From assembly GCA_038496445.1 (NCBI GenBank), contig JALMLS010000531.1, positions 1 to 64,000 on the forward strand: 64,000 nt of DNA, in the 5' to 3' direction. Origin of the DNA: Trichosphaerium sp. ATCC 40318. Its lineage: Eukaryota; Protista; Tubulinea. Of the stretch, positions 3,490 to 61,660 are shown piece after piece. Within the stretch, counting starts at the first letter, position 1. Every line of letters begins with the position of its first letter. The notes beneath the pieces were generated by a model that was not told the DNA's origin, did no database searches, and saw nothing but the letters and a program-made list of their open reading frames with translations. The translations under genes and the position numbers were made by a program.

Positions 3490-6400
3490 GTGTGACATTT
3501 AGTTTACGCCCGAACCAAAGCATGCAACGTACGCCAACAAAAAAAACGATTGAGTATAGATTGTTTTTTATCGATTTATTCGTTTCCTTGCGCAAACGCA
3601 AGTCCCCTGAAGTGCTCTAATGGCCCAAAAGGTTTTTCGCCAGAAGATGTGGCCAAGATGAGCAACGAAGCTGTTCTCCTTTACACACGTGTATACACCA
3701 CGTACAGCGTAACAGATGACGTGGAAGAGCTACGGAAAAACCTTGTTCAAGCCAAAGACTCAAATGTGATCATTCTTGACTTATTTTACGACAAATACCT
3801 TGAAGTTCTGGAAACTTTTGTTAAAAATGAGGCAGCTTTTAGTCAAATACCCGAGGAACGACCAAAACAATATTGTGTTCCTATCTTGGGGCTTTACTTT
3901 GGATGTGGTACAACATCTTTACACATATTAAATTATTAATTACGTGAATCTCATGTTACTGTAGGTAAGTCAACGTTTCTATGGCATTTTCAAGGAGCAA
4001 TTGCAAGCGGTCTTAAAGCTCACTTGGCAGTATGGTCGATGCAAACGTGTAATTTTACTGACTAAAATTAGAACAAAAAAAAAACCGAAGAACTACCTCT
4101 AGCGGACGAGATAGTAGCACTAGCTAATGAGATATTCGAAGGGGATTTTGTGTACATTGATGTGAGAGCTATGAAACCATACCGTCAAGCTGAATTCAAC
4201 AAAAAACTAGCCAACAAAATCATGGTGGAGAAGTTCTTCAATAAAATAAATAATGCACGTGGAACACGTACGCTCGACACTTCATAGCTCTGCAATAACA
4301 TTATTATGTTTTTCTTCCAGATTTGAAACAATCAGAAAGTATGACCTTCAAAGAGGCGTTGTTGGAATATCACAACAAAGTGGGTCACATGTATCCGCTA
4401 GTTTTTGGTTTAGATGAGATAAGTCCGACAAATAGATTTGTGGTGGATAGTGTATGGCTTACAAGTATATTCTTTTTACTCACTTTGAAGTTAGTTAAAA
4501 CCATTTGGTGACTTTATTGATTGGATGTGGGCAACTTTGTACAACGTTGCTGCAGAGCTTCATACCAAACGTAGAGTACATTTCGTGATGGCAGGACATA
4601 ACCCTATTTTCATGGATATTGGTACTAGTTCCTTTAAAGTTGTTTTTACTGCGACTTATTTGTTCCTACAGGTGGTGTAGAAGGTGATCACATTAAAGAA
4701 CCTGGTTGGAGGCTTTCTTCAGTGACAAACAGTAAACCCATTCTGTTAAATGTAAGCCATTTTCTTTTATTTAGCTGATTGCTTTTCTTGTTAACTGATT
4801 CCATAGAATTTCACACCCAAGTTTATGGAGAGAATCATTGATAAGGCAATTTCAAAATACAAACAACCAATTGAGTTTAAAGGAGATGCAAAGAAAATCT
4901 ATGCAAAGAAAATGGTTGACGTTTATGCAGGTCATCCTAGATATATACAGAACGCATTTCAGTAAGCTTTATAATGCTGTTTCTGTTCCTAATACCAAAA
5001 AGAGCATTACTTGATGAAGCCGAGAATTACAATTTTACAGAACAAAAGAAGCTGATTGTTACATTCAAGGATCTGAAACGGTATGTGGATTACCAATGTT
5101 AGTTGTTATACCTTTAGCTCATACTTGTTAAGTATATTGGACAGAGCATATTTGAAATCTACACAAACAGAGAGTAGAAAACAAGAAATACGGAATATAT
5201 TGGATCCAGACATGTTTGATGCAAAAGGATTCGATTCTGTGCTCTTAGCATTCACTAAAATTGCTATTGCTGCTCAGTATGGACTACCTATTGCAGCAGC
5301 AGCTTCTGTGGAAGAGGCTATGGATACAAAGTTTGCAATACATCCAGGGGAAGGTGACGGCAGCAGACACATCTATACTCTCAGAAAAATACTCTCAATA
5401 GTGCCAATGATGCTTATCCCAAAGACAGCAAAAACACAAAAAGGAGCAGGCGCCACATTCTATTATCCAAAGCTTCCCAAGCCTGTTATCGATTATGTTC
5501 ATAAACGCACCAACAATGTGAAACTTAAGCGTATGATGAAACAATGAAACGCTGATGAAAAAGGTAGGAGATTGTTTTATCGCCTTCCCTCAACCACTTC
5601 ACTCAAGGAGCAATTTTGGAGAAGTTATCCATAATAGGATTTGAAAAAAAAGTAGGACAAAGCCTTTCAGACATTATTCACTCTTTAAAGGGGACTAAAC
5701 TTGAGGTACGTTCTACCAATCTCTCATGTTTTATCAATTAACAATAAGTAGAACGTTATACTTCCCAAGGAGTTCACAGCATTTCCTAAAGTAACAAAGA
5801 ACGGAACACGCATCAACTGGCCTGATGTAACAGGGGAAACAGTACATGAGCTTCTAACAATTGTAAAAACTGATTTTGCAAACGCGTGGGACTTATATGA
5901 ATCTCCTTGCATGATAAATCCTCGCGATAAATCAGGTACACCAAAATCTCAACGTTTCATTTCATGCTCTAATGAATACAAATAGGTTCAATGGACTTTT
6001 ATTTCAAAGGATGTGTAATTAGCAACAAAGGCGAAAGTGATATGGAGTGTGAGGGCGAAGATATTGCTTGTAATATTGGCTGGAAAATGAAGGTATAGTT
6101 GTGAGTTTGGATTTATTAGTTGTATAATTCTTGTTTCAGGCAGAAAGACATGAAATGAAGTTTAGTACACTTGCTGCTGATATACCAAAATATCACGTGA
6201 AGAAATCCGATGCAACCATTGGTGTGATTATGTTTATATGCTTATTGAGGGGCCAAGAGATGATAAATTTTATTGGTGAGGAAACTATCATGCTTGGACG
6301 TGTAAAATGATTCTCTTAAATGCGCTAAAATCAATATTGTAGCTGGTGAGTACAGAAAGACTGGAAAGGTTCTTTTTAACTATACAACAAATACTATTAT

Positions 6401-8923
6401 CATTGGTGGTAAAAAGGTGCTCTCAATATACTTGTTACAGGTTTAACTCTGACTTCTAGATACACCTTGATGAAACTAAAGACGAAGAAGGGCCTAACAC
6501 TTTGAAAGTTGGTGAAAACATATCAAAAACATTTAAAGCTCTAAAGACATTAAGAGTCAGTGATGAACACGCTGAGGAAGTGTTTAGTGCTTGTAACAAA
6601 AAACGCCAGCTGGTGCTTCATAAAAGCCCTCCTAAAGATGCAGCCACAAAAGACTCTTTTATTGTAGACGTAGGGATAGATGTGTGTATCCTGAGTCTCA
6701 AAGCTATCAAAGCTTTATGTAATATGAATGATCGTCAAGTGGCAACCTATGGAAACAACGTTAACAAAGGTCTGTTCGGTCTTAATGAAGGCAAACTTAT
6801 AATGAATGGTACATAATTCTGCTTTTTTTCTTACCCTTTTGGTTTTCTTTCATTTTCTGCTTACGTTTGTACAATCAAGGTAACATTATGAAAGTACTTA
6901 ATATTAAACCAAAGACAAAGACAATCACGATTTACAACCGCTACAATAAAGAACAAAAGAAGAAAGTCATAGTACAAAAAAATGATATTCTACCAAATTT
7001 AAGTACGACACATACTACCTAATTATGTTTTTCTAACACCATCTAGTTAAAGAAAACTTTGGCGTAAAAACAATTCTGTTGGATGAAAACTCAAATCTTG
7101 TAGTGAGTTACAATGAACTTGAAGATGGAGGATTATACTGCTACAATGAACACTTGCAACCTGCAGATCCAAAGACAATCCATTTAAAGTACAATGGCCA
7201 AGTAAAAGATATTGTTCTAAATCAAATGTCCACTGGACAGCATCGGAGGTACCTTATTAATGAAACCTCTAAATGATGATCTAATCTAACAGATTCGTTT
7301 AGTTCCAAAACTATTTGAACTGGCTCTTGACATCAATCTTGTATTTAAAGATGCGAAGGGTGAAAGAGTTAGGCTCTTCAAAGATGTAGAAAACGATGGC
7401 ACATACACCATTGATGGTGTTAAAACTATAAAGCTGTTACATAGAGGCGCTACAACATCAATGGCTGTTGGACCAAATACAGAATTTTACACTGAAGGTA
7501 AAACTCTTAAAGCCATTTCTGACTAATAGGAGTTAAATACCAAACACAACTCATCGTTTAAATAGTTGCGGCACTGTTTGGAGTAGACCCAGATATAATA
7601 AAACTAAAATCCAGTGAAGGGAAAACAGTGTTTCACTATTCACAACTCATGGGTAATGCTACTTACAATATTGACGATGGCACAAGGACCGTCAATGTTG
7701 TGTTTAACGGAGAAACGAAATCCATAGATATTAGACATGGTACAAAAATGCCAAGATTGCTCAATCAAGGTACTGTCACTCTGTAATAGCAATTATCCCT
7801 TTTAACAGATTTGATAGTTGCAACGGTTTTTGGATTAGATTCAAGTAAAATTAGATTACTCGAAAATGGGAATGCAGTGTTCCATTATGCGCAATTACTG
7901 GATAATAACTCTTGTTCTGTTGTACTAACAAGAAACATAATCACGTTTATTTACAAAGATGTGCCAAAACAACTTGAAGTCGGTCCACAAACTGACTCAT
8001 ATTTTGAAGGTGCTGCACAACATATACTGTCTTTCTAACCTGTCGATTAGTAGCCCAATTGTTTGGGTTGAGCTATGATAGCATCAAAATTAGCGATATG
8101 TATGGAAACAAGCTTGCCAATACAGATGTTATGAATGCTAAGAGGTGTTTGGTAGAAGATGCCAATAGGAAAATTACACTCACATATAACGGTGCAATCA
8201 ATGACGCCAACACAAAAATTGATACAAGACACATAAATGTGACCTCAAATACAAACTTGTTGGATGAAGGTAAGCACGTTTATCAACAGTACAAGTCGCC
8301 ATCTAACCTCTGTTACAGTCCAAGCCTTGTTCAGTCTACGCAATACCCCAGTGATTAAAGATTTCACTGGCAGAGAGGTGTATACCTACGTGCAAGTAAA
8401 AGATGGCGGAGCATACAATGTAAAAAATACACCTATCAAAAAAAGAAAAGCAATCAGTTATCCTGAAGGAAGTAAGATTGTAGAAACAAAAGCAAGGACA
8501 CCACAAAGAACTCCGAATAGCAATCAAGAAGATTATTCAATGGCAGATGTCTCGACAGCCTCACCTCGTGGCCCATTTTCCTCACCTGTTCCAAGCCATC
8601 AAGCTACAAAGCGTAGATCTCCAAGACGAGAATACAAGCGGTCACCAAGCCGTGATCACAAGGATAGATACAGGCGATTGCCTAGACAGAAATGTAACAA
8701 CTACCGTACTCGCAATCGACGGTATGAAGACCAACACTACCACAGGCGTGACTACAATGACTACCGTGACAGGTACTCTCCAAGAGATCGTCAATATGAT
8801 CGTGATAGTTCAAGAAGACATGCAGATACACGCATAGAATACCGTAGAGGCGATACCACACGAAGGCAAAGAAAGAACAAAGATAGACGCAACCGAAGCA
8901 GGAGATACCGTGATATAAACTAG
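3490..8923 (+). pseudogene. Family A copy 1: Crinkler-like NTPase + restriction-fold nuclease + 6 Ubl-like repeats + basic RS/RD tail; disrupted
   Basis: Spliced PILGLYFGCG|KSTFL, PLVFGLDEIS, HFVMAGHNP, YAGHPRYI, NPRDKSG|SMDFY...IGWKMK. Compared with its inverted twin it has TCA>TGA at 5545-5547 and a 2-nt deletion at ~7233. The 5' end is approximate. Confidence 0.75.
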
Positions 8924-18315: not shown

Positions 18316-21300
18316 AGGCAAGAAACACCCAGAGTGTTGATCCAACACCAGGTGAGCAGAAAGTTATGCTACGTACGTTATTTTATCAAATTCAGTAATT
18401 ACACGCAACTATGCGCTTTCGCGAATCAATCATGTCTTTGAAAAAACTAATTCTGTGCAATACTAGGTTTCGATTCTGAGGAACTTGCGAAGTTGGATTC
18501 AAAGGGCATCAGAGATTTAGCCCGCATCCACACTACCTTTAATGTGAATGACGACCTGCCACAACTTCGAGCATGCCTAGAGGGCCAACATACCGAGAGT
18601 GTTATTATCCTGGATCTGTTTTATGACACTTATCTCGAGCTGTTGAAAACATTTGTAGGCAACACAATAAGCCTGAGTGAACCAAGCGGGCCTGGCCAAC
18701 AGGCACACCCAAAATCGTACTTCACCCCAATTTTGGGACTTTACTTCGGATGTGGTACTTATTATTACCTTGGTTGTTTGTATTATTTTTGAGTCTTAAG
18801 TTTCTTAGGCAAGACAACATTTTTGATGAATTTTCAAGTGGCTATTTCGACAGGCCTTTTACATTACATAGAAGAAGCTGGATTAAACCATTTTGATATA
18901 CCACCATTTAGTCAGGATCCAAAGAAGAATAAAGCTGCTGTAACAACGCTTGCAGAAAATATCCTCGAAGGAGACATGGTATTTATCGATGTGCGATTCA
19001 TCAAACCAATGTCTGATGCCAAATTCAATGAAGCGGAATGCAACAAAAAAGTTATTGAAAACTTTTTTGAGCAAATAAATAAAGCACGTGGATTAGGTAC
19101 AAAGCTTGAACTCACATTTATTCTCTCTAACACTGTGTAGACTTTGCCAAGTTTTTTGAAGAAATAAAAAATACAAGTGAATTAGGTACAAGAAAGTTGA
19201 ACTTATAAACATGTTCTAACACTTTGTAGGCTCAGATGATATTCCTAAAAAAATGGACACTTTAGAAAACGCAATAATATTCTATCACAACAACGTGGAA
19301 CACGATCTCCCACTTGTTGTTTGCATAGACGAGTTAAGCCCAACAAATAGATTCTCGACAGAATCGGTAAATTTTTTGTTTTTTTGGATTGAAGTTAACA
19401 AGTACCAGCTAAAAGGATTTGAACTTTTCGTGGGATGGATATGGGGATCTGTATACGATGCTGCATTTAAATTGAAAGGAGAGCGCGAAATACATTTCGT
19501 GATGGCCGGACACAACCCAATTTTCATGGACATTGGTGGGTTAGAAGACACCAACGAAGTTTCAACGTGGAGACGTGATTCGATTACAAAAAGTAAACCA
19601 CTTCTCCTAAACGTACATTTAGCAGATATTAAATGCTTTATGACTAACTTTACTAGACGTTTACACCAGAGTTTATGTGCAGAATTATTGATAAGGCAAT
19701 AAATGTGCATGACCAACCTATTCGCTTTGATGACGATGCAAAGGAAGAGTATACAAAGGCCATAGTTGATGATTATGCAGGTCATCCTAGATATATACAA
19801 AATATATTCAAGTAAGCTATTGGTAAAAGTCCTTGCGCTAATGTTGTACTCAGTGGAGAATTGGCTTTAGCGAGAGAGTATTTGCGTTGCCAAAAGTACA
19901 TTACAAACAGTTACCAGTGAAATTTATTGTTCTATTTTTAGGAAATGTAAGCATATCAAGCTAGAAGATGTAAAACAGTACGGATTAAACATAATTACTA
20001 GCTCACTCATAGTTTGATTTAAGAATGGTGGCAGAGGCGTGGAATAGGGCTACACACACAGATGACAGGGAAAGAGAAATAAACAATATCTTGGATCCAT
20101 GCATGTTCGATGCAGCAGGATATGACTCTGTGCTATTCGCGTTTGCTAAAATAGCCCTGGTTTCTCGCTATAATCTCCCTATAGCAGTAGGAGAAACTGT
20201 AGAAGAGGCCATGGCAACAAAGTTTCAAATTAACAAAAAGGAGACCACTAGTAGAACTATTTTTTCGCTCAAAAAGATACACTCAATTGTACCAATGATG
20301 CTCACACAAGAGAAAAAAGGAAAAGCAACATTCCTTTATCCGAAGCTCCCAGCTCCTGTGACAAAGTTTTTAAGCGATAACTGTTCAGAAAGCCAACTGA
20401 AAGATTGGTTGCAATTTGGGAAAAGTGCCGACAAAGGTACTTAGCCAGATTGGTTTATCTTAATATTGCTAGGAGCACTATTAGAGAGGATATCAAAACT
20501 TGGGTTCGGTGAGCACAAGGGCAAACAATTCTCAGACGTTATACCATCTTTAGCAGACACTAAATTGAAGGTAAGACCTTTAAATTGTTTTTCTACAACA
20601 TAACAACATATAGGGAGTTAACATTCCAACAATATGTAATTCGTTTCCTAAAGTGACCAGCGGAGCAGGACTTCTCAAGTCTGAAATTACCGAAAAACAA
20701 GCAAAAGAATTGCTACAAGCACACAGTACAGATTTTATGAAAATATGGAAGGTGTACTCACCTCCTTGCATGCTAAATCCTTGCTCAATGTCGAGTATGT
20801 GAAACGTTTCTACGTATACAGTTTATTAAACAATAAGCAGGTTCAATGGACTTTTATCTCAAGGGATGTACAATTGGAAATGCTGAAGGTACAACCGCAG
20901 TGTGCAATATCGGATGCCAAATGAAGGTAAATTGCTACGGATAAAACCTTAATTAATCTTTTTTGATATAGGCGGAACAAGATGGATTAATGTTTAATCA
21001 GATAGCCCGTGAGCTCAACAAGTATCATGTGGATACTTCTGATGCATCAATTAACGTGGTAATGTTTTTATGTGTTAAAATAGGCGCAGAGTTGACAGCA
21101 TGCCTTGGAGACACAACTGTTATGCTTGAACGTACGTACACATAGCTTTTAATTATTATTGTACGAAATTAACACAACAACAATGTAGCTGGAGAATACA
21201 GAAAAGTTCCTGGCAAAGCTCTGTTTAACGTTACTACGAATACAATTATCATTAATGGTAAAAAGGTATGCTGTACCCCATTGTCAACAAAATACTAATG

Positions 21301-23900
21301 CGCTATAACAGATAAAACTGTTTGAAGCACCTAGCAATAGTATTAAACCAGGGAATGTAATATCAGTGGAGTCAAAAGTAACAATATCCAAAGGTGATCA
21401 TGTGACCACCCCTATTAAGAAGCTAGCAGTGAGTGATAGAGATGCTGCGGAAGTACTTGCGATCTGTGATGGGCAAAAGCTTTTGCTGTATAAAAAAGCT
21501 ACTGCTTCATCGCCCAAAAAAGCTACTGCTTCATCGCCTAAAAAAGCTACTGCTTCATCGCCCAAAAAAGCTACTGCTTCATCGCCCAAAAAAGATACTG
21601 CTTCATCGCCCAAAAAAGCAGATCCACTTAAAAAAAAAAAAATTTGCACGGACTCATTCACAATACCTCCAGATATGGATGTTTGTGTGCTTTGTCTAAA
21701 AGACATCAAACTTTTATGCAATAAAAAGATCAATGAAAATTTCCAACAAGAAACATTCGGAAACAACTCTCAACTGAATGGTTATGGCTTGAACGAAGGT
21801 GCACTCATAATGAACAGTACGTAAAATTGATACAATGTATATTTTGTTAATACACGTCATTAGGTGACATTATGAGTTTCCTCAATCTTAAACCAAAGAC
21901 GAAAACCATAACACTGTTTAACATCCGTACCAAAGAACAATTTGAAGTAAGAACCCAACGTGGTGACAACTACAGCAAAATAAGTACAAAATGCGAAAAT
22001 ATTTTTTCTACAGCTTAATCTTGTTTTAGTTAAAGACGAGTGTGGTATAGCCACTCTTCTCTTTGATGACAAACACTGTGCCATACTAGAGTATGATAAA
22101 GTTAAAGAAGGCGGTAAATACTACTTTGATCCACAGCTATGCTGTGAACCCAAGTTAGTCCATTTACATTACAGGGGTAAAGTGGAAACTCTGCGTTTAG
22201 ATTTCGGATGCACTCTACATACTGCAGGCAATCTCTAGTATTATCAGCTTCCTTTTTTACTAATATCTTGCCAGTAAAAAACCTCTTTACACCAAAGTGG
22301 AAAAAAACAAGAGTGAACATTAAGATACATGACAAAGATGGAAAAATAATAAACGACTCTGATGTAGTTGATGGTGGTACCTACTACGTAGATGATGGCA
22401 TTCGAAAGATTAGCGTAGTTTTCAAAGGAGAAACTAAATGCACAAGTATTGGTCCATATACATTAATTCTTAATCATGGTACTGTAATATTTTACAACTA
22501 CTCCTCACAGATATGTAGTTGCAACCTTGTTCGGATTAGACTACGCTAAAATAGCCCTGCTATCCATGGACGGCACTAAAGTATATTATTACAAGGAATT
22601 GGTAGAAAACGACACTTACAAACTAGATGACGGCACAAGAGCTGTCAATGTTGTGTTTAAAGGAGAAACAAAATCCACAGATATTGGACCAGATACAAGA
22701 ATACCATATCAAGGTGCGTTAAGATCTCCCAAACAAGATAGATATTCTAACTGAAAGATAGTGGCTGGATTATTTGGACTAGATTCAAGTAAAATAAAAC
22801 TACAACTCGAAAATGGGAATGAAGTGGTCCACTATACACAAGTAGTGCATAACGACTCTTGTTTTGTTGTTCTAACGAAAAAGACAATCACGTTTATTTA
22901 CAAAGATACACCTAAACAACTTGAGATCAGTATACAATCTAGCTTGTATCTCGAAGGTACTTTGTGAATTTATACTTTCTCTAAAATGTCTTTTAGTTGC
23001 GGAATTATTTGGATTACAGCCTGATTGTATTACATTTAAAGACGAGTATGGACAAAAGGTTGTCAATAAAGACCTGATGACAAAGGATATATGCATTGTG
23101 GGTGATGCCATTAAAAAAATTACAGTCACTTACCAATATCCAAAAAAAGAACTTATAACAAAACACCTAAACATCACCACCGATACAAACTTGGTGGACG
23201 AAGGTACGAAGTTTCTTGGCAGCAAAACAAGTTTGATGTTGACATTATTCTTTTAGCCAAAGCTTTGTTCGGCTTGCAAGATGCTCCAGTGATTAAAGAT
23301 TTTACTGGCAGGGATGTGTATACCTACGCACAAGTAAAAGATGGCGGAGCATACCATGTAAAAGACACGTATCCGCAAGAGCTAGATAGTATGTACCATG
23401 AAAAAAAAAAAGCTACCAACAAAAGAAAAGCAACCAGTGATCATGAAGGACTTGTTGAAAAAAGACGTAAAACAACTTCCAGGTCTGATAATCAATCTCC
23501 AGAATACAAACGCAAGAAATCACCAAGCAATGATGATTACAGAAGCGGATACAAACAACCTACTAGACGTAAAGATAGTAGCAGGCGGCGTAATAATGAT
23601 AACAAGTATCACGATTATCACGATAGTCATGAAGATCGACAGTATCGCAACCGTCATAACAATGATAACAAGTACCACGACTATCATGATAAGTACTCTC
23701 AAACTGACCGTCGATATGATGGTGACTCTTCAAGAAGACACACAGATGCACGACGAAGAGACTTACCAAAACACCATCATTACGATCGTGATTCTCAAAA
23801 ACGCTGGGATAGGCGCACTGACCACCGAAGAGAAGGCACACGGAGTAGACAGCGAACAGATAAAGATGATTGGCACTCTAAAAAACGAAGCATGAGATAA
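18316..23900 (+). CDS. Family A copy 2: NTPase + restriction-fold nuclease + SPKK repeat insert + 6 Ubl-like repeats + basic tail; start uncertain
   Basis: PILGLYFGCG|KTTFL, PLVVCIDELS, HFVMAGHNP, YAGHPRYI, NPCSMSS|SMDFY...IGCQMK. Exon structure matches the other copies. Tail ORF 23265-23900. Confidence 0.78.
21492..21620 (+). repeat. Coding 24-bp minisatellite, ~5.4 units, encoding (KKATASSP)n
   Basis: aaaaaagctactgcttcatcgccc repeated, translated KKATASSP x4 + KKDTASSP + KKA. Absent from copies 1, 3 and 4. Confidence 0.95.
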
Positions 23901-34674: not shown

Positions 34675-34742
34675 GTTACGCACTTAAGCCTTAAGGCTAG
34701 CAAGGCATCCGTGTGCAGCTTTTCGCATTAAACTAGCTGAAA

Positions 34743-35255: not shown

Positions 35256-35279
35256 CATAGAAGCTTAATCTAGCTTTGG

Positions 35280-35540: not shown

Positions 35541-35753
35541 ACTCCCTGCCTTTGCAGCGTATGAGAACATCACTAGGTCATGGAAACATTTTGTACAGCA
35601 TGACGGGTGGGCGAAGCGGTACAAGACAACACAGCTTTGCATCTTTTGAACGTCTTCTTCTCGTACTGATGTTCCCTCAAAGATATCTTTATTTTGAATC
35701 AAAGCAAAATACTCTATTGTTTTAAACCTAAAATGTAGCTTGTCTATTAAAGA

Positions 35754-38700
35754 CTAGTTTATATTATCACGGTATCTCCTGCTTCGGTTGCGTCTATCTT
35801 TGTTCTTTCGTTGCCTTCGTGTGGTATCGCCTCTACGGTATTCTATGCGTGTATCTGCATGTCTTCTTGAACTATCACGATCATATTGACGATCTCTTGG
35901 AGAGTACTTGTCACGGTAGTCATTGTAGTCATCACGCCGTCGATTGCGAGTACGGTAGTTGTTATAGTTCTGTCTAGGCAATCGCCTGTATCTATCCTTG
36001 TGATCACGGCTAGGTGACCGCTTGTATTCTCGTCTTGGAGATCTATGCTTTGTAGCTTGATGGGTTGGAACAGGTGAGGAAAATGGGCCACGAGGTGAGG
36101 CTGTCGAGACATCTGCCATTGAATAGTCTTCTTGATTGCTATTCGGAGTTCTTTGCGGTGTCCTTGATTTTTTTTCTACAATCTTACTTCCTTCAGGATA
36201 CCTGATTGCTTTTCTTTTTTTGATAGATGTATTTTTTGCGTTGTATGCTCCGCCATCTTTTACTTGCACGTAGGTATACACCTCCCTGCCAGTGAAATCT
36301 TTAATCACTGGGGTATTGTGTAGACTGAACAAGGCTTGGACTGTAACAGAGGTTAGATGGCGACTTGTACTGTTGATAAACGTGCTTACCTTCATCCAAC
36401 AAGTTTGTATTTGAGGTCACATTTATGTGTCTCGTATCAATTTTTGTGTTGGCGTCATTGATTGCACCGTTATATGTGAGTGTAATTTTCTTATTGGCAT
36501 CTTCTACCAAACACCTCTTAGCATTCATAATATCTGTATTGGCAAGCTTGTTTCCATACATATCGCTAATTTTGATGCTATCATAGCTCAACCCAAACAA
36601 TTGGGCTACTAATCGATAGGTTAGAAAGACAGTATATGTTGTGCAGCACCTTCAAAATATGAGTCAGTTTGTGGACCGACTTCAAGTTGTTTTGGCACAT
36701 CTTTGTAAATAAACGTAATTATGTTTCTTGTTAGTACAACAGAACAAGAGTTATTATCCAGTAATTGCGCATAGTGGAACACTGCATTCCCATTTTCGAG
36801 TAATCTAATTTTACTTGAATCTAATCCAAAAACCGTTGCAACTATCAAATCTGTTAAAAGGGATAATTGCTATTACAGAGTGACAGTACCTTGATTGAGC
36901 AATCTTGGCATTCTTGTACCATGTCTAATATCTATGAATTTCGTTTCTCCGTTAAACACAACATTGACGGTCCTTGTGCCGTCGTCAATATTGTAAGTAG
37001 CATTACCCATGAGTTGTGAATAGTGAAACACTGTTGTCCCTTCACTGGATTTTAGTTTTATTATATCTGGGTCTACTCCAAACAGTGCCGCAACTATTTA
37101 AACGATGAGTTGTGTTTGGTATTTAACTCCTATTAGTCAGAAATGGCTTTAAAGAGTGTTACCTTCAGTGTATAATTCTGTATTTGGTCCAACAGCCATT
37201 GATGTTGTAGCGCCTCTATGTAACAGCTTTATAGTTTTAACACCATCAATGGTGTATGTGCCATCGTTTTCTACATCTTTGAAGAGCCTAACTCTTTCAC
37301 CCTTCGCATCTTTAAATACAAGATTGATGTCAAGAGGCAGTTCAAATAGTTTTGGAACTATACAAATCTGTTAGATTAGATCATCATTTAGAGGTTTCAT
37401 TAATAAGGGTACCTCCGATGCTGTCCAGAGTGGACATTTGATTTAGAACAATATCTTTTACTTGGCCATTGTACTTTAAATGGATTGTCTTTGGATCTGC
37501 AGGTTGCAAGTGTTCATTGTAGCAGTATAATCCTCCATCTTCAAGTTCATTGTAACTCACTACAAGATTTGAGTTTTCATCCAACAGAATTGTTTTTACG
37601 CCAAAGTTTTCTTTAACTAGATGGTGTTAGAAAAACATAATTAGGTAGTATGTGTCGTACTTAAATTTGGTAGAATATCATTTTTTTGTACTATGACTTT
37701 CTTCTTTTGTTCTTTATTGTAGCGGTTGTAAATCGTGATTGTCTTTGTCTTTGGTTTAAGATTAAGTACTTTCATAATGTTACCTTGATTGTACAAACGT
37801 AAGCAGAAAATGAAAGAAAACCAAAAGGGGTAAGAAAAAAAGCAGAATTATGTACCATTCATTATAAGCTTGCCTTCGTTAAGACCGAACAGACTATCGC
37901 CTTCATTAACGTTGTTTCCATAGGTTGCCACTTGACGATCATTCATATTACATACAGCTTTGATAGCTTTGAGACTCAGGATACACACATCTATCCCTAC
38001 GTCTATAATAAAAGAGTCTTTTGTGGCTGCATCTTTAGGAGGGCTTTTATGAAGCACCAGCTGGCGTTTTTTGTTACAAGCACTAAACACTTCCTCAGCG
38101 TGTTCATCACTGACTCTTAATGTCTTTAGAGCTTTAAATGTTTTTGATATGTTTTCACCAACTTTCACAGTGTTAGGCCCTTCTTCGACTTTAGTTTCAT
38201 CAAGGTGTATCTAGAAGTCAGAGTTAAGCCTATAACAGGTATAGTGAGAGCACCTTTTTACCACCAATGATAATAGTATTTGTTGTATAGTTAAAAAGAG
38301 CCTTGCCAGTCTTTCTGTACTCACCAGCTACAATATTGATTAGTGCAATTAAGAGAATCATTTTACACGTACGTCCAAGCATGATAGTTTCCTCACCAAT
38401 AAAATTTATCATCTCTTGGCCCCTCAATAAGCATATAAACATAATCACATCAATGGTTGCATCGGATTTCTTCACGTGATATTTTGGTATATCAGCAGCA
38501 AGTGTACTAAACTTCATTTCATGTTTTTCTGCCTGAAACAAGAATTATACAACTAGTAAATCCAAACTCACAACTATACCTTCATTTTCCAGCCAATATT
38601 ACAAGCAATATCTTCGCCCTCACACTCCATATCACTTTCGCCTTTGTTGCTAATTACACATCCTTTGAAATAAAAGTCCATTGAACCTATTCATTGAGCA

Positions 38701-41170
38701 TGAAATGAACGTTGAGATTTTGGTGTACCTGATTTATCGCGAGGATTTAACATGCAAGGAGATTCATATAAGTCCCACGTGTTTGCAAAATCAGTTTCTA
38801 CAATTGATAGAAGCTCATGTACTGTTTCCCTTGTTACATCAGTCCAGTTGATGCGTGTTCCGTTCTTTGTTACTTTCGGAAATGCTGTGAACTCCTTGGG
38901 AAGTATAACGTTCTACTTATTGTTAATTGATAAAACATGAGAGATTGGTAGAACGTACCTCAAGTTTAGTCCCTTTTAAAGAGTGCATAATGTCTGAAAG
39001 GCTTTGTCCTACTTTTTTTTCAAATCCTACTATGGATAACTTCTCCAAAATTGCTCCTTGAGTGAAGTGGTTGAGGCAAGGCGATAAAACAATCTCCTAC
39101 CTTTTTCATCAGCGTTTGATTGTTTCATCATACGCTTAAGTTTCACATTGTTGGTGCGTTTATGAACATAATCGATAACAGGCTTGGGAAGCTTTGGATA
39201 ATAGAATGTGGCGCCTGCTCCTTTTTGTGTTTTTGCTGTCTTTGGGATAAGCATCATTGGCACTATTGAGAGTATTTTTCTGAGAGTATAGATGTGTCTG
39301 CTGCCGTCACCTTCCCCTGGATGTATTGCAAACTTTGTATCCATAGCCTCTTCCACAGAAGCTGCTGCTGCAATAGGTAGTCCATACTGAGCAGCAATAG
39401 CAATTTTAGTGAATGCTAAGAGCACAGAATCGAATCCTTTTGCATCAAACATGTCTGGATCCAATATATTCCGTATTTCTTGTTTTCTACTCTCTGTTTG
39501 TGTAGATTTCAAATATGCTCTGTCCAATATACTTAACAAGTATGAGCTAAAGGTATAACAACTAACATTGGTAATCCACATACCGTTTCAGATCCTTGAA
39601 TGTAACAATCAGCTTCTTTTGTTCTGTAAAATTGTAATTCTCGGCTTCATCAAGTAATGCTCTTTTTGGTATTAGGAACAGAAACAGCATTATAAAGCTT
39701 ACTGAAATGCGTTCTGTATATATCTAGGATGACCTGCATAAACGTCAACCATTTTCTTTGCATAGATTTTCTTTGCATCTCCTTTAAACTCAATTGGTTG
39801 TTTGTATTTTGAAATTGCCTTATCAATGATTCTCTCCATAAACTTGGGTGTGAAATTCTATGGAATCAGTTAACAAGAAAAGCAATCAGCTAAATAAAAG
39901 AAAATGGCTTACATTTAACAGAATGGGTTTACTGTTTGTCACTGAAGAACGCCTCCAACCAGGTTCTTTAATGTGATCACCTTCTACACCACCTGTAGGA
40001 ACAAATAAGTCGCAGTAAAAACAACAACTTTAAAGGAACTAGTACCAATATCCATGAAAATAGGGTTATGTCCTGCCATCACAAAATGTACTCTACGTTT
40101 GGTATGAAGCTCTGCAGCAACGTTGTACAAAGTTGCCCACATCCAATCAATAAAGTCACCAAATGGTTTTAACTAACTTCAAAGTGAGTAAAAAGAATAT
40201 ACTTGTAAGCCATACACTATCCACCACAAATCTATTTGTCGGACTTATCTCATCTAAACCAAAAACTAGCGGATACATGTGACCCACTTTGTTGTGATAT
40301 TCCAACAACGCCTCCTTGAAGGTCATACTTTCTGATTGTTTCAAATCTGGAAGAAAAACAAAATAATGTTATTGCAGAGCTACGAAGTGTCGAGCGTACG
40401 TGTTCCACGTGCATTATTTATTTTATTGAAGAACTTCTCCACCATGATTTTGTTGGCTAGTTTTTTGTTGAATTCAGCTTGACGGTATGGTTTCATAGCT
40501 CTCACATCAATGTACACAAAATCCCCTTCGAATATCTCATTAGCTAGTGCTAATATCTCGTCCGCTAGGGGTAGGTCTTCAGTTTTTTTTTTGTTCTAAT
40601 TTTAGTCAGTAAAATTACACGTTTGCATCGACCATACTGCCAAGTGAGCTTTAAGACCGCTTGCAATTGCTCCTTGAAAATGCCATAGAAACGTTGACTT
40701 ACCTACAGTAACATGAGATTCACGTAATTAATAATTTAATATGTGTAAAGATGTTGTACCACATCCAAAGTAAAGCCCCAAGATAGGAACACAATATTGT
40801 TTTGGTCGTTCCTCGGGTATTAGACTAAAAGCTGCCTCATTTTTAACAAAAGTTTCCAGAACTTCAAGGTATTTGTCGTAAAATAAGTCAAGAATGATCA
40901 CATTTGAGTCTTTGGCTTGAACAAGGTTTTTCCGTAGCTCTTCCACGTCATCTGTTACGCTGTACGTGGTGTATACACGTGTGTAAAGGAGAACAGCTTC
41001 ATTGCTCATCTTAGCCACATCTTCTTGCGAAAAACCTTTTGGGCCATTAGAAGGGACTTGCGTTTGCAATGAAACGAATAAATCGATTAAAAACAATCTA
41101 TATTCAATCTCTTTTTTTTTGTTGGCGTACGTTGCATGCTTTGGTTCGGGCGTAAACTGAATGTCACAAC
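35754..41170 (-). CDS. Family A copy 3 (inverted twin of copy 1; no disabling lesion seen): NTPase + nuclease-fold + 6 Ubl-like repeats + basic tail; start uncertain
   Basis: Same exons as copy 1 but reads through the positions broken there (MMKQSNADEKG; QMSTLDSIGG). Confidence 0.78.
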
Positions 41171-41518
41171 CTAAAAACGTATTGTTTTTATCTATGGCGC
41201 ATCGTAACAACTTTCACAAATTAATGATAGATAATGTCTTAATTGAGTAAGGACGGAAAATACACTTTCAAACTTGAAATTTGACGATTTGACAGTAAAG
41301 TATATTTGACTTTGTTTGTTTGTACTTGTAGTCCCGAGAAAGTTTGAAGTGAAGTTACCAAAGCACACACAGCAAGCACAGGAATAAGGCAAAGGAACGC
41401 TTAGTGTTTATTTTGACTTTTTCGAACTTTGTATTTTCCAATTTTAGTTTGTAGCTACATGTTGCTACTTGACAAAGGTTTATTCAGACCCAAGAGCCAG
41501 AGGCATCATTTGTTTATT

Positions 41519-42717: not shown

Positions 42718-43272
42718 TCTCGTGGCAAATGTGCCAGAATAGAGCTTAATTACGCCGCATTGTGACTTAAATTGGATGTTGGAGCGTAGAACTAAGTTAT
42801 GTCAGGTGATTTCAAGTTTCTAAAAAAACACGTGCTGTCATACTAGATCCTGGGCAGCTTCCATATGTCACTGCAATATATCTTACCAAAAGGTCTGATC
42901 TACATCACTAAATTACACTTACTACGCGGTATTTGTTATTACCTCCAACATGCAACTCCTCAATGGCACAACAAGGAGGCATTTATGCCAAACACACAAA
43001 GGAGCGCATGTTGAAAAGGTCAATCCGAACTCATTCAGTATGTACTTCACAACATCTGGAAGCTAGTTCAATTCCACTCGTTCAACTGACGCAATTTAAA
43101 CCTTCACTTTATTGTTTCTTGGTTTTTATGACTACCCAAACGAGTATAATATCTTCTTTGCAGATGATGCAATTTAATCTGATAAAAGCGTCTGGAGTTT
43201 AATACCAATTTATTTTTGTTAAAGAGTATTTACATTTTTTCTTTCTTTTTATTGTACAAAAAAATAACCAGT

Positions 43273-55931: not shown

Positions 55932-58900
55932 ATGGATCCTGACAATACACGTACGGTTTGGCTTGATTCTATCTATTTTGAGAAACCGTAAAGGCGGACT
56001 CTTAAAAACGCTTGACCAACAGGTGTTGCAGCTGTTCATGGGTTGTGACTTCGCTTTACCCTATTTGTGTTTCATTATCCTCAAATATAATTAAATGCCC
56101 TAACTTACGTGCTAGGGGTGAATAGACATAATATAGAAACGGAACTCAAGAAAACAACTACAACTCTTGGAAGCTTATCACTTGACAAAGAAGAAGAACC
56201 CAAAATGCTACGTACGTTACTTCCCTTTTGTGCACAATGGCCATGGTTTCACGCTTAATTGACAATGTAAGCGTATTGCCCACGGCAAAGCCGTTCTCGT
56301 TCTACCCTTTCACACCACATGTTCGAATGGTTTTCTTTCTAAAAGCGTTTAGGTTTTTCTGAGAAAACAATTGACGAGTGGAGTGATGATACAGTTCGCC
56401 TCTACATTCGCATATACACCACGTTTAATGCAAATACTGAAGTGAACCAGATGAGGAAATATCTCAAAGACTTTACAGTACGGAGGGTGGTCGTTCTTGA
56501 CTTATTTTACGATACATACCTTGACGTCCTGGAAACTTTTGTGAACAACGAAGGTATTCTCAATTCAAGTTCAGCTAACGAAACCAATCCAAAATTGTAT
56601 TTCGCGCCAATCTTTGGACTTTATTTTGGATGTGGTATGTTACAGCACTAGATTAATCTATAACCTAACTTGCCAAAGGCAAGTCAACATTCCTCAGAAA
56701 CTTTCAAATGGCTATTGCGACAGGACTTGACCAGTATTTACAAGTAAGTCAAAGTTATTCAAAATGGCATTTAATGTAAATTAGAACCGAGGCAAACGGA
56801 AAGAACTAGCCCTTGCAACTGAAATACTTAAAGGCGATTTTGTATTCATTGATGTGGAAGGTATTAAACCGGCAGGTACCGATGCATTTGATATAAAGAA
56901 AGCCAACACAATTGTGGTGGAGAGATTCTTCGACCAAATAAACCTTGCACGTGGCTTAGGTAAACAAATGTGCAATTACTCAACAAATGAATAACACTTT
57001 TGTAACAGAATTGAAACCAAATGGAATGACATTTGCGGAGGCAATATCATTTTACCATGAGAGTGTGGGACACGATCATCCTCTACTTTTTGGGTTAGAT
57101 GAGATAAGTCCATCAAATAGATTTGTAGCGGGTAGTGTACGATCATGATAAATTCGTTTTAGCGATTGGCTCATATTTGTGTTAGTTAAAACCATTTGCC
57201 GACTTAATTGAATGGGTGTGGTCTACACTATACAATGCTACCAAGAAGCTTCATAAGAAACGTAGAGTACATTTCGTGATGGCTGGACATAACCCTATTT
57301 TCATGGATATTGGTACTAGTTCCTTTAAAGTTGGCTATGGTGACTTATTTGTTCCTAATAGGTGGTGTAAAAGGTGAGCACATTAAAGAACCTGGTTGGA
57401 GGTGTTCTTCAGTGACAAACAGTAAACCGCTTCTCTTAAACGTAAGTACTTTTTCTGTACTGTTTGTTAATTGAATGTCATAGAACTTCACACCCGAGTT
57501 TATGGAGAGAATCATTGACACTGCAATAACCACGTACAATCAACCAATTGAGTTTAGCGAAGCTATGAAGAAAGAATATGCGAAACAAATGGTTGAGGAA
57601 TTTGCTGGTCATCCGAGGTTTATTCAAAACGCCTTTCAGTACGCACCAGTTCTTACTTAATTGATACGCTAAATTCTTTCTGAAGAGGAGTACTTGATCG
57701 ATCTGTAGTATACTATAAAAAATACCAAGAAAAGGTCAAGATTGTTACTGAAGAGCATCTACAAAGGTACTTTACAAAGAATGTTCTGATCTGAAGTTCA
57801 GGAACTAATCCTCTTACAGGAAAATGAATGAGGCAATAATGAGTTCGCAGGCAGTAAACAGAACAAGAGAAATACAAAATATACTTGATCCAGACATGTT
57901 TGATGCAAGAGGATTCGATTCTGTGCTCTTAGCATTCACTAAAATTGCTATTGCTGCTCGGTATGGATTACCTATTGCAGCCACTCTGAGTGTACAAGAC
58001 GCTATGGGTACGAAGTTTACAATAAATCCAGGAAAGAACACAGACAGCAGACACGTGTATACGCTTAGAAAAGTACACTCGATAGTGCCGATGATGCTTA
58101 TTCCGAAGAAGGCAAAAACCAAAAAAGGAGAAGGAGCAACATTCTACTTTCCAAAGCTACCTGTGCCTGTAATAGAGTATATTTGCTCACATATTGATGA
58201 TGAGGAACTTAAAGACATGATGCTAAAATCAAACACTCAAGAAAAGGGTTAATATAACTATCTGTGACTATTCTCCTTTAATGACTGCTTTAGGAGCACT
58301 GTTTGAGAAGCTATCCAAATTTGGATTTATGAAACACAAGGGAGCATTGCTTTCAAGTATCATTCCGTCTTTGCAAGGGACCAAATATGAGGTATAATTA
58401 GTGCTTTTTTGTTCATTTCCAACTGACCAATAAAATAGAATGTTGTACTTCCTATGGACTTTAAACCATTTCCGAAAGTAACATCAAGTGGTGAAAAGGG
58501 ACGCATAAACTGGGATGGTCCTATAACAAATAAAATGTTATTGGAGCAACAGACAGTCGTAAAAGAAGATTTTAAAAAAGTATGGAAGTGTTACGACTCT
58601 CCTTGTATGTTAAATCCACGTAAAGAGTCAAGTACGCCATCAGCATCACTGTTTATTTATGAAGTATTGAATAACAACAAAAGGTTCAATGGATTTTTAT
58701 TGCAAAGAATGTACAATCAATTCCGACAATATGGAACACCAAGACAAAGGTACATGTAATATTGGATGGCAAATGAAGGTACCATTCTTTTGCTAGTGTT
58801 TAGTCCCTAAATCTTGTTACAGGCCGAAGAAAAAGGATTGACATTCGGTACACTTGCTGCTGAGATACCAAAGTATCACGTGGATTTATTTGAAGCAAAG

Positions 58901-61660
58901 CTGAATTTGATCGTGTTCATGTGTTTAAATAGAAGCAAAAATATGATAAACTGTATAGGCAAGGAAACTATTATGCTTGAGCGTACGTAATTCACATTCT
59001 CTTTACATTGCTAATAATGTTGCAGCTGGTGTTTACCGAAGAACTGGAAAGGGACAGGCTCTTTTTAACAGTACAACAAACACTCTTATCGTGGATGGTA
59101 AAAAGGTACTCATACTACAACCTTAGCTATGAAGGTAACGCTGTACCTAGATACAACTGCACGAGCCAAAGTCTAAAGTACCGATCAACAGAACTGTTTA
59201 TGTTGGAGACACTGTTCAGATTAAAAAACAGAAACACAAGATATTGAGAGTAAGCGACGCGGACGCTGAGACAGTGTACAAGGCTTGTAATACAAACCAA
59301 CAGCTTGTGCTTGTAGCAAGCACCTCAGAAACTACCAAAAAACCAATGAAGGCTTCGTTTACGATAGCCGACAAAATGAATGTATGTGTACTGAGTGAAA
59401 ACGATATCAAAGCTGTATGCTATGCGAATGATGTACAAGTTCTACAATTTGGAAACAACGTTAGAGAAGGTGATGATTTGATTGGTCTTAATGAAGGAAA
59501 ACTTATTATGAATGGCACGTGATTTATTTTGAAATATGTCTGTTTTCTTTCTCGGAAACCACTTTTTTTTTACATTTTACCATCTAGGCGACATTATGAG
59601 AGTCCTTAATATTAAACCAAAGACAAAGACAATCACGATTTACAACCGCTACAATAAAGAACAAAAGAAGAAACTAAAAATACAAAAAAAAGATGTTCTA
59701 CCAAATTTAAGTATGACACATGTATAATTACTTCCACGTGTTTACACTTTATTTAGTCAACGAAATTTTTGGAGTAAAAACTATTCTCTTGGATGCGAAA
59801 TCTAATCATATAGCAAGTTACAATGAGGTTAAAGATGAAGGGTCATACTATTACGATGAACACATTCAAGCTGCAGATCCAAAGACAATCCATTTAAAGT
59901 ACAATGGCCAAGTAAAAGATATTGTTCTAAATCAAATGTCCACTCTGGACAGCATCGGAGGTACCTCTTTACTGATAAACCTTAGCACTCCTAAACGTTG
60001 CTTCCTAACCTGCTTCTAAATAGTGTCACGTTTATTTGAATTACCTATTGCCAATCTTATATTCAAAAACAAGAAGGGTGAAAGAGTTAGGCTCTTCAAA
60101 GATGTAGAAAACGATGGCACATACACCATTGATGGTGTTAAAACTATAAAGCTGTTACATAGAGGCGCTACAACATCAATGGCTGTTGGACCAAATACAG
60201 ACTTATACACTGAAGGTACAACTCTTAAAGCCATTTCTGACTAATAGGAGTTAAATACCAAACACAACTCATCGTTTAAATAGTTGCGGCACTGTTTGGA
60301 GTAGACCCAGATAAAATAAAACTAAAATCCGCTGAAGGGACAACAGTGTTTCACTATTCACAACTCATGGGTAATGCTACTTACAATATTGACGATGGCA
60401 CAAGAACCATCAATGTTGTGTTTAAAGGAGAAACGAAATCCATAGATATTGGACCAGATACAAAAATGATAAATCAACGTACAGTCTATCTTTAAACCCT
60501 AATAACAGATTGTTAGTTGCCGTGGTATTTGGATTAGATTCAAATAAAATCAAAGTAAAACTTGAAAACGGGAATGAAGTGGTCCACTATACACAATTAG
60601 TTGATAATGCCACCTGCTATGTTGTATTAACTAGAAAGGTGATCACATTTATTTATGGAGGCACATCAAAACAACATGAGATCGGTATAAACACTGATCT
60701 GCATTTTGAAGGTACCGCAACTATTATCACTCCCGGACACTGAGTACCTTTTCTCACGTGTTTGTTTAGTTGCAAAATTATTTGGGGTCAATTCCGATTG
60801 TATTGCAATTCAGGATAAGTATGGAAACAAGCTTGGAAATGAAGACGTTATGAATGTTGATAAGTGCTTGGTGAAAGACGCCATTAAAAATATTAAACTC
60901 ATCTATAAACGCATTGTCAATCACTCAGAAAAAGAGCTTTTAACTAAATACCTAAATGTGACTACAACTACGAAATTGTTGCAAGAAGGTACAACGTGAT
61001 ATAAATAATACCAAAACGCTTTAACTAACGCTTCAAACTCGGTTAGTGCAAGCCTTGTTCAGTTTAGACAACGCCCCAACAATCTCAGACTTTACTGGAC
61101 AATCTATACATTTCTATTCACAAATAAGACATGGCGGTTTATACCATGTCAAAGACAATACTTCTGCTGTGAAGAAAAGAAGAGCAACCAGTGATCCAGA
61201 AGCAAGTATGAGTGTTGAGAAAAAAGCAAGAAAACCAACGCCGAGAATCTCTGACAATCAAGAGTATTCAATGAGCGATGCTTTACCCAACTCACCTCAT
61301 AAACATTCTCGATATGGAACCAAGAGTTCACCAATACGTGACTATCGCCCATCACCAAAGCGTGATGAATATTACAATGACAGGCGATCACAAAGACGTA
61401 AATATAGCTACAATTCCCGTGATAGATATGAAGATCAATATCACCGCAAACGTCGTGATAGCAACAGTCGATATGATAATGACTCTACAAAAAGATATGT
61501 AGACTCACGAACAAGCTATAGAAAAGATGACTACACACGCAGGCAACAAGAAATCAGGTACAGGCAACGAGATGATAGGCAACAAAAGGACTGGAAAACA
61601 ACCAGCGGGCAGAGCACAAAAGAGGATAAATACAGCTATAGAGGACAAAGACGTAGGTAA
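55932..61660 (+). CDS. Family A copy 4: NTPase + restriction-fold nuclease + 6 Ubl-like repeats + basic tail
   Basis: Probable ATG 55932. PIFGLYFGCG|KSTFL, PLLFGLDEIS, FAGHPRFI, KG|ALFEKL, NPRKES|SSMDFY...IGWQMK, TLAAEIPKY. Tail ORF 61046-61660. Confidence 0.8.

Follow-up and report, generated by a model that had tools for sequence, protein, structure and literature searches.

RESULTS

Four paralogous loci with a nearly identical exon plan

The locus described here raised the question of what kind of protein is encoded by an intron-rich gene family that occurs in several copies and has almost no relatives. An earlier note had reported four loci sharing a plan of Walker motifs, nuclease-like motifs, and repeats, and our analysis of the window (i.e., the whole 64-kb stretch of DNA that was analyzed) agreed that all four exist and are collinear. 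The paralogues, c1 to c4, lie within these 64 kb of a Trichosphaerium sp. ATCC 40318 contig; c2, c3, and c4 are intact and c1 is dead. A hand-built model of c4, based on the open frame and splice sites, placed the coding region at 56205..61660 on the plus strand, with 22 coding exons and a 1392-aa product. The c4 introns are 38 to 181 nt long and all but one are of the GT-AG type. The exception is a c4-specific GC-AG intron (59515..59587, plus strand), whose donor GC lies inside a CACGTG word and is GT in the other copies in the four-copy alignment. The most divergent intact copy is c2 (18366..23900, plus strand; 1449 aa, 46% identity to c4), which carries a low-complexity insert in its linker exon. 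The intact copy c3 (35754..41137, minus strand; 1376 aa, 61% identity to c4) lies in the right arm of a 10-kb inverted duplication, and its twin c1 (3522..8923, plus strand) lies in the left arm.

Each paralogue is divided into 20 to 22 short coding exons, and the splice sites are canonical. In tblastn searches, 21 of 21 c4 exon peptides were matched in order in c1, c2, and c3. Exon order and phases were kept in c1 to c3, and nearly all junctions had GT/AG dinucleotides where projection placed them, with the phase conserved. Thus, the exon plan that the earlier note had called the same in every copy was nearly identical, but c2 has lost two introns. Of the four genes listed in the note, c1 is a pseudogene, in which TCA has become a nonsense TGA (5545-5547) and two nucleotides (CT) have been deleted near 7234.

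The gene starts were revised as well. The first coding exon of c4 is a 7-nt mini-exon (56205..56211, plus strand) that reads ATGCNAC and is followed by the donor GTACG. Because the word ATGCNAC/GTACG precedes exon 2 in each of the four copies, amid otherwise unalignable flanks, the mini-exon likely carries the true start codon; c4 would then start at 56205 and not at the ATG at 55932 proposed earlier. The starts previously given for c1 to c3 are non-ATG codons. In the searches described below, exon numbering begins at 0 after the mini-exon, such that coding exon 9 of 22 corresponds to "exon 7."

Selection, duplication, and relatives

The paralogues are 46 to 61% identical overall. The dN/dS ratio was 0.25 to 0.66 in every segment, with purifying selection on c2, c3, and c4. 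Across the ubiquitin-like (Ubl-like) units described below the ratio was 0.26 to 0.48, and no diversifying selection was visible at this resolution. The flanks are unshared between copies, except in the c1/c3 segmental duplicate. The window is rich in duplications, and there has been gene conversion and recent pseudogenization among the copies. We also observed exon-level repeat duplication that was offset from domain boundaries, as well as intron loss, within the 64 kb.

When 1.84 billion proteins were searched with a HMMER profile, one relative emerged. This relative, P0001, is a protein deduced from a transcript in a survey of marine protists; it shows 46 to 50% identity and is unbroken across six modeled splice junctions, including all of the middle-domain junctions. 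No relatives other than P0001 were found in 1.8 to 5.8 billion proteins, metagenomes, and viral contigs, and profile and sequence searches with exon-wise queries and P0001 assigned no family to any part of the protein. The family is lineage restricted, occurs in an amoeba-like eukaryote, and is essentially without detectable relatives. The view that the paralogues are real genes, with a single reading frame that joins the NTPase to the middle domain, the repeats, and the tail, is supported.

A P-loop NTPase core followed by a probable winged helix

The P-loop NTPase core and helical lid (aa 86 to 345) are encoded at 56601..57835 on the plus strand, and the motifs of this region are invariant in c2, c3, and c4. 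A Walker A motif together with a Walker B motif of the hhhhD[DE] form, the signature of P-loop NTPases, was found in all three intact copies. The Walker A motif (56616-56689), which is split by an intron, reads GCGK[ST], comes after a hydrophobic strand, and differs from GxxxxGK[ST] in a one-residue shift of the first Gly. The Walker B region (57083-57103) reads PL[LV][FV][GC][LI]DE. A sensor-1-like VHFVMAGHN (57267-57293) and a sensor-2/GxP-like AGHPR (57604-57618) follow. Pfam searches with single exons left the NTPase core unmatched.

Coding exon 9 (142 aa; 57820..58247, plus strand), the most conserved exon, follows the lid. An AF2 model built from four sequences had a pLDDT of 59.8. About 45 of the best 50 VIA neighbors of this model were winged-helix proteins, with Z scores of 3.3 to 5.2, which is under the tool's meaningful level; they included the winged-helix domains of Cdc6, ORC, MalT, Avs3, Apaf-1, and SAMD9. 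A Foldseek search with the same model returned no significant match. Based on the modeled fold, coding exon 9 probably encodes a winged-helix domain. The Walker A, Walker B, and GHPR motifs noted previously are invariant among proteins that are only 46 to 61% identical, and a winged-helix-like domain comes next, as in AAA+/STAND proteins. We infer that the NTPase belongs to the AAA+/STAND class.

A middle domain with nuclease-like residues

The middle domain (aa 484 to 690; 58294..59105, plus strand), which spans five exons, was delimited in a family alignment with P0001 and is a candidate PD-(D/E)xK nuclease. An E in LFEKL (58299-58313), a D in SMDFY (58686-58700), and an xK-A-E in [Q/K]MKAE (within 58758-58828; all plus strand) are conserved in four sequences, along with four invariant Cys residues. 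The D of SMDFY and the K of xMK are separated by 21 to 27 residues, a conserved E is located at K+2, and a further E is located in the N-terminal helix. The residue at the first (D/E)xK position is Q or K and is never acidic. Most of the motifs listed previously were present, namely, PI[FL]GLYFGCGK[ST], hhhh[GC][LI]DE, AGHPR, KGA..E, NP...S.SMD, and IG.[QK]MK; however, c3 has K in place of the reported Q, and the trailing E..K varies, with conservation limited to the A-E.

The middle domain was unmatched in Pfam, NCBIfam, PADLOC, and PDB sequence searches. AF2 modeling of P0001 gave a pLDDT of 31. In the case of an ESM-Atlas model (pLDDT 0.36), 6 of 10 structural-neighbor sets were PD-(D/E)xK families, with TM scores of 0.22 to 0.40. 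The conserved residues and these low-confidence structural neighbors hint at a divergent PD-(D/E)xK nuclease.

Six tandem Ubl-like units

A linker domain of 121 aa, encoded by a single exon (59151..59514, plus strand), has two beta-alpha-beta-like sub-repeats, ends in a conserved GLNEG.LIMN, and had no family match. It precedes six tandem Ubl-like units of about 64 aa (59626..61159, plus strand), which were delimited via alignments and HMM searches: U1 (59626-59860), U2 (59882-60133), U3 (60140-60399), U4 (60403-60629), U5 (60636-60885), and U6 (60886-61159). An HMM built from the c2 units found six repeats in c4 (14.5 to 72 bits) and six in c3 (11.7 to 53.6 bits), and the best of 200 shuffled controls scored 4.3 bits. 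The six repeats of about 65 aa claimed earlier are thus borne out. Units are 14 to 39% identical to the first unit, and a phase-1 intron interrupts the predicted helix of each.

The array opens with beta1-beta2, encoded in "exon 14," and its final strand, beta5, lies in the last exon, such that all six units are complete in domain phase. Read in this phase, they follow a beta-beta-alpha-beta-beta-beta order with a ubiquitin-like residue pattern, and the consensus KTI.h.Y.G..TK.h.....T.L...VA.LFGLD...I.L.D..G..V..Y..V...G.Y.V.D fits the ubiquitin layout by eye. The residue pattern suggests a beta-grasp fold. Neither Pfam searches with 12 exon-phase units nor a PDB search with a profile of such units gave a Ubl match; these queries consisted of parts of two adjacent units. 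No Pfam matches to LRR, WD40, TPR, or ANK, the STAND-type sensor repeats, were found. A C-terminal Gly-Gly is absent from the unit ends, which finish in ...Y.V.D(D)G(T), with the next unit following directly.

Protein termini and predicted localization

The 85-aa N-terminus had no match in Pfam, including Crinkler, in agreement with the earlier claim that it contains no recognizable header. It holds only a short LDLFYD word and has no signal peptide or hydrophobic stretch. The C-terminal tail (61160..61660, plus strand) extends to the stop codon and is of low complexity after a bipartite NLS-like motif, KKRR-x12-KKARK (61172-61234). Its composition is R 19%, S 14%, D 11%, K 10%, and Y 10%, so both the NLS and the Arg-Asp-Ser-Tyr tail reported before are present. 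This R/S/D/Y tail resembles those of splicing-associated proteins. Judging from these sequence features, the proteins are probably intracellular and nuclear.

Comparison with known systems

The earlier comparison with Crinkler/RHS-type (CR) effectors was apt to the extent that NTPase+HTH+REase is their commonest toxin module (Zhang et al. 2016, summarized in PMC5289972), but sequence and profile searches provided no link. Shared features are the order of a P-loop NTPase, a probable small HTH-type domain, and a candidate restriction-fold domain, a ubiquitin-like module in the same polypeptide, an apparently nucleus-directed protein, and a variable paralogue family. In contrast to CR effectors, the proteins described here have no N-terminal Ubl/helical header and no LxLFLAK or HVLVxxP motifs, and they carry six C-terminal Ubl-like units instead of a single N-terminal one. 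Pfam RHSP/Crinkler did not match any exon or P0001.

The Walker A and B motifs, the lid with a GxP-like motif, the probable winged helix (at the Z scores given above), and the C-terminal repeats are all reminiscent of STAND NTPases such as Apaf-1, NLRs, MalT, and Avs. Avs proteins also bear PD-(D/E)xK effectors. However, the candidate effector of STAND proteins is N-terminal, whereas here it is located between the winged helix and the repeats; the repeats form globular units of about 64 aa, unlike LRR, WD40, or TPR, and sensor 1 is N rather than R. The hhhhDE Walker B, the Asn that ends the sensor-1 strand, the Arg in the G..R lid motif, and the probable C-terminal winged helix are like those of ORC/Cdc6 AAA+ proteins. 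Unlike these proteins, the family has a Walker A without the first Gly, about 1000 aa of extra C-terminal domains, multi-copy and lineage-restricted genes, and no family match.

C-terminal tandem Ubl domains are known in OASL, which has two that take part in antiviral signaling, and in USP7, which has five. As in our proteins, these non-conjugatable units are located behind an enzymatic or nucleotide-binding domain, and those of OASL and USP7 bind partners. The catalytic partners, however, are unrelated, and the units here are six, near regular, and clearly recent duplicates of one another, each interrupted by an intron at one shared internal site. Polyubiquitin likewise has head-to-tail units (about 64 to 76 aa) with the ubiquitin residue pattern, but our array has no Gly-Gly, low identity among its units, and no Pfam ubiquitin match, and it is embedded in a 1392-aa protein. 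We found no description in the literature of a six-unit C-terminal Ubl-like array with a nuclear-type tail or of an NTPase-plus-nuclease conflict-type module joined to a poly-ubiquitin-like array.

DISCUSSION

We tentatively favor a model, which we consider possible, in which an AAA+/STAND-type switch gates a divergent PD-(D/E)xK nuclease and the Ubl-like array and basic tail act as adaptors. The model starts from the observed gene structures, paralogy, purifying selection, invariant NTPase motifs, six repeats, and lack of relatives. The P-loop core, helical lid, and winged helix would form the nucleotide switch, and the binding and hydrolysis of NTP would gate a central effector directed at nucleic acid. 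The most plausible identity of this effector would be a divergent PD-(D/E)xK nuclease of the sort found in the NTPase+HTH+REase module of CR proteins, and the six non-conjugatable units and the basic tail may serve in partner binding and nuclear targeting.

The presence of Q or K where the (D/E)xK triad calls for an acidic side chain, the lack of nuclease family matches, the splicing-type tail, and selection that is purifying and not diversifying would all suit a nuclear ATPase scaffold without a nuclease. Such a scaffold would be an ORC/Cdc6- or STAND-like switch whose middle domain is a binding module and whose array and RS-like tail assemble chromatin, RNA-processing, or proteasome/ubiquitin partners. 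We consider it somewhat doubtful; the family occurs in just one other sampled organism, and multiple copies, pseudogenization, and gene conversion make a pattern unusual for core machinery. A STAND-like layout of a switch with C-terminal repeats, the Avs3, MalT, Apaf-1, and SAMD9 winged-helix neighbors, and turnover in the gene cluster would fit an innate immune receptor along the lines of the earlier note, an NLR/Avs-like protein whose poly-Ubl array senses pathogen ubiquitin-system enzymes or acts as their decoy and whose oligomerization switches on the nuclease. The dN/dS values of the Ubl-like units and their globular form, as opposed to the solenoid sensors of known STAND proteins, argue against this idea, which we regard as unlikely. 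It is likewise improbable that the family represents an undescribed eukaryotic class in which a restriction-fold domain is under the control of an AAA+/STAND-like NTPase with its winged helix while six tandem ubiquitin mimics serve as sensor or decoy, i.e., a nuclear innate immune receptor against ubiquitin-manipulating viruses or bacteria. A defense role is speculative.

It is rather unlikely that the proteins are true CR toxins or effectors delivered to prey, competitors, or symbionts, with the trafficking Ubl moved to the C-terminus and multiplied. The core order of NTPase, HTH-like, and candidate REase domains, which matches the commonest CR toxin module (PMC5289972), the action of CR proteins in nuclei (PMC5289972, PMC6131194), and the variable paralogue cluster fit this proposal. 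Against it stand the missing signal peptide and known header and the unmatched Pfam Crinkler/RHSP profiles; moreover, the 1.8 billion representatives searched include many CR-rich taxa, and no relatives were found among these. A transposon origin has been proposed for CR NTPase-REase modules (PMC5289972), and one copy is dead in a duplication-rich region, as might be expected of domesticated or still selfish mobile-element genes or of decaying copies without host function. That origin is very improbable here; each copy has 20 to 22 conserved spliceosomal exons, the flanks are unshared outside the c1/c3 duplicate, no terminal repeats were noted, and three intact copies are under purifying selection.

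If the domain calls hold, an amoeba has a conflict-type module of NTPase and nuclease joined to a poly-ubiquitin-like array. This would widen the range of sensor or adaptor modules on STAND/AAA+ switches and connect the toxin core of Crinkler/RHS proteins with an intron-rich gene family encoded by the host. It would also make ubiquitin mimicry open to testing in the setting of protist immunity or nuclear biology. Should the role of the proteins prove to be housekeeping, the family would still clearly exemplify large multi-domain proteins for which essentially no relatives can be detected.

Results

Three more collinear copies of the c4 interval (56205 to 61660, forward strand) were recovered in the window, which consisted of eukaryotic DNA with a G+C content of 35 to 40%, via blastn and tblastx. 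The copies were c1 (3522 to 8923, forward strand) and c3 (35754 to 41137, reverse strand), each with a nucleotide identity to c4 of about 72%, and the more diverged c2 (18366 to 23900, forward strand). To model c4, we read the three frames by hand against the paralog matches. The resulting gene had 22 coding exons and introns of 38 to 181 nt; the median intron length across the family was 48 nt, and the donor consensus was GTAC (35 of 61 introns). By tblastn, each c4 exon peptide was matched in order in all three other copies, and GT and AG were located exactly at the projected, phase-conserved positions for nearly all junctions. The assembled open frames were 1392 aa (c4), 1376 aa (c3), and 1449 aa (c2), with protein identities of 61% for c4 and c3 and 46 to 47% for c2 versus c4 or c3. 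Expression at the locus and the unity of the whole transcript are predicted from the continuous frame and conserved phases.

The start was most likely a 7-nt mini-exon, ATGCNAC, which was followed by GTACG and was conserved across the four copies although the flanks around it could not be aligned. In c4, this conserved word of the four-copy comparison was at 56205 to 56211 on the forward strand. An earlier note had placed the c4 start at the ATG at 55932, which we rejected because it had no counterpart in the other copies; the starts that the note gave for c1 to c3 were not ATG codons. The shared exon plan that it described held for the collinear, phase-conserved exons except in c2, which lacked two introns common to c1, c3, and c4. 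In c2, exons 1 and 2 and exons 4 and 5 were fused (18809 to 19096 and 19409 to 19612), which reflected either intron loss or exonization. At the first site, about 48 nt between two conserved exon blocks read in frame as coding. A GC-AG intron was specific to c4, with its donor at 59515 to 59520, inside a CACGTG word; the other copies had GT. CACGTG occurred 50 times in the window versus about 7 times expected from base composition, and part of this excess may sit at splice sites because the family donors were mostly GTAC(G).

The c1 copy is a pseudogene. Relative to c3, its 97.5%-identical inverted twin, c1 had a TCA-to-TGA change at 5545 to 5547 and a CT deletion near 7234. The two copies were carried by an inverted duplication of about 10 kb (1 to 9992 and 34674 to 44665; 97.5% identity) with a spacer of about 25 kb, and c1 has been inactivated since. 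Flanking these copies, the duplication also carried an ORF that weakly matched MORN_2 (9411 to 9923 and 34743 to 35255). For the three intact pairs, dN/dS (Nei-Gojobori) was 0.25 to 0.66 in all nine segments where dS was estimable. The dS between c4 and c3 was 0.21 in ubiquitin-like (Ubl) units 1 and 2 versus 0.6 to 1.3 elsewhere. In addition, c4 59570 to 60655 was 84% identical, introns included, to 6861 to 7953 in c1 and 36706 to 37800 in c3, a block that spanned Ubl units 1 to 3, versus about 72% outside it. Low dS together with high identity running through introns is consistent with gene conversion in this block. We also considered whether the four copies were transposons and rejected this reading because they shared conserved introns and their flanks were not shared. 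A second repeated family was present between c2 and c3, with three copies in both orientations at 77 to 93% nucleotide identity (24957 to 26436, 28689 to 30155, and 32385 to 33495; also 26066 to 26515 and 31871 to 32321). Its long ORFs had no Pfam match.

We searched 1.84 billion representative proteins with HMMER, using a profile made from the longest exon, and found a single relative (E = 5.4e-4, via a 40-residue overlap). This protein, P0001, was 340 aa in length, came from the MMETSP transcriptome collection, and was 46 to 50% identical to the paralogs. P0001 was unbroken across six modelled junctions, exon 7/8 through exon 12/13, and thus provided independent mRNA-level support, in a relative, for how we spliced the winged-helix, middle, and linker regions. 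Word-indexed searches of a 5.8-billion-protein index with P0001, the repeat profile, and the linker-exon profile yielded nothing beyond P0001. The metagenome and viral contigs searched held no relatives, and exact-sequence look-ups with P0001 and the exon 7 ORF matched no contig. Sequence and profile searches of Pfam, NCBIfam, PADLOC, and PDB with exons, P0001, and exon alignments were blank or at chance level.

The N-terminal motifs read in the earlier note, a degenerate Walker A, a Walker B, and GHPR, were confirmed as invariant in c2, c3, and c4. Walker A was PI[FL]GLYFGCGK[ST], in which the first Gly of the canonical P-loop was displaced by one residue; Walker B was PL[LV][FV][GC][LI]DE; and AGHPR was in a helical segment and resembled a sensor-2 Arg or GxP motif. 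VHFVMAGHN was also invariant and formed a sensor-1-like strand ending in Asn. The motif order in c2 to c4 was what we take to be the AAA+/STAND ATPase order. Single exons reached no Pfam family; at the motif level, the NTPase assignment was well supported.

Exon 7 (57820 to 58247; numbered from 0 after the mini-exon) was located after the lid and was folded with a four-sequence alignment (pLDDT 59.8). Foldseek returned no match to this model at E ≤ 0.001. In an exhaustive VIA search, about 45 of the best 50 neighbors were winged-helix proteins, including the post-NTPase winged helices of a TPR-STAND protein, Cdc6, ORC subunits, MalT, Avs3, Apaf-1, SAMD9, and SSO1545, an archaeal AAA+ protein. 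The Z scores of 3.3 to 5.2 were under the tool's meaningful level, an Atlas shape search gave TM values below 0.5, and an ESM-Atlas feature search yielded nothing usable. The modelled neighbors indicate that exon 7 is probably a winged helix.

The middle domain (c4 aa 484 to 690), a candidate PD-(D/E)xK nuclease, had several features conserved across c2, c3, c4, and P0001: a Glu in the N-terminal helix (LFEKL), S.SMDFY, CNIG.[QK]MKAE, FPK[VI]T, PCMLNP, GKALFN.TT.T., and four Cys residues. Its D-to-K spacing of 21 to 27 residues was like that of PD-(D/E)xK enzymes, but the residue before xK was Q or K and never acidic. As to the QMK motif singled out previously, MK was conserved, whereas the Q position was Q or K. 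Pfam, NCBIfam, PADLOC, and PDB sequence searches with the domain were blank, and AF2 of P0001 alone gave a pLDDT of 31. An ESM-Atlas feature search had NA37 as its lead (0.90, 156 shared features), which was likely due to chance. The ESM Atlas's own model (pLDDT 0.36) had PD-(D/E)xK families in 6 of 10 structural-neighbor sets (TM 0.22 to 0.40), and these low-confidence neighbors were the sole positive hint of a restriction fold. We considered the chances for and against this fold to be about balanced, and those of an active nuclease to be lower.

The linker exon (59151 to 59514 in c4) contained two sub-repeats of about 25 aa, h.V.[SD]..D...V..aC....q..L, which suggests an internally duplicated small domain. 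Only the c2 linker exon (21470 to 21660) had a low-complexity insert of repeated ASSPKKAT-like units.

The repeat units (59626 to 61159 in c4) aligned well with one another in exon phase. The exon-phase array opened in exon 14 with a C-terminal half-unit and closed in the last exon with an N-terminal half, which indicated that the structural units were offset from the exons. Re-cut in structural phase, the array resolved into six whole units, each about 64 aa long. An HMM built from the c2 units found all six in c4 (14.5 to 72 bits) and all six in c3 (11.7 to 53.6 bits), and the best of 200 shuffles scored 4.3 bits; thus, the six tandem repeats proposed earlier were upheld. In the unit consensus, strands beta1 and beta2 led into a T-capped helix that finished with LFGLD, after which came three strands that included a conserved G and closed with Y.V.D; by eye, the consensus followed the ubiquitin layout. 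Polyubiquitin would share this tandem arrangement, but we rejected it because the units had no Gly-Gly. No Ubl family was matched in Pfam and PDB profile searches with pieces of two adjacent units, no stop-free intron read-through within the repeats yielded a contiguous Ubl unit, and an ESM-Atlas feature search with a repeat unit gave nothing usable. From the consensus, we lean somewhat toward a beta-grasp fold.

The NLS-like motif and the R/S/D/Y-rich tail noted previously were evident in the sequence: KKRR-x12-KKARK was conserved in kind in all copies, and the roughly 140 aa after it had a high content of R, S, D, K, and Y. An N-terminal hydrophobic segment was absent. Nuclear localization is plausible.

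Discussion

Among Crinkler/RHS-type proteins, the order NTPase, HTH, REase is the commonest toxin module (PMC5289972); these proteins have a single Ubl as well, and nuclei are their site of action (PMC5289972, PMC6131194, PMC11064341). The core order read for the c1 to c4 family, NTPase, probable HTH-type domain, and candidate REase, would be the same, but no header, motif, or profile link was found, so membership in the Crinkler/RHS-type group is not supported. By analogy, it is reasonable to suggest that the family works like these proteins. The switch, winged-helix, and repeat logic is like that of STAND/Avs proteins, whereas the repeat type and the effector position differ.

A full-text literature search turned up no account of an NTPase-nuclease that carries Ubl domains in a tandem array. 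Within the family, the winged helix is weakly supported, the assignments of a nuclease and of beta-grasp units are plausible yet unproven, and a role in defense is speculative. The copies c1 to c4 form a genuine gene family that is nearly an orphan and whose architecture is undescribed.
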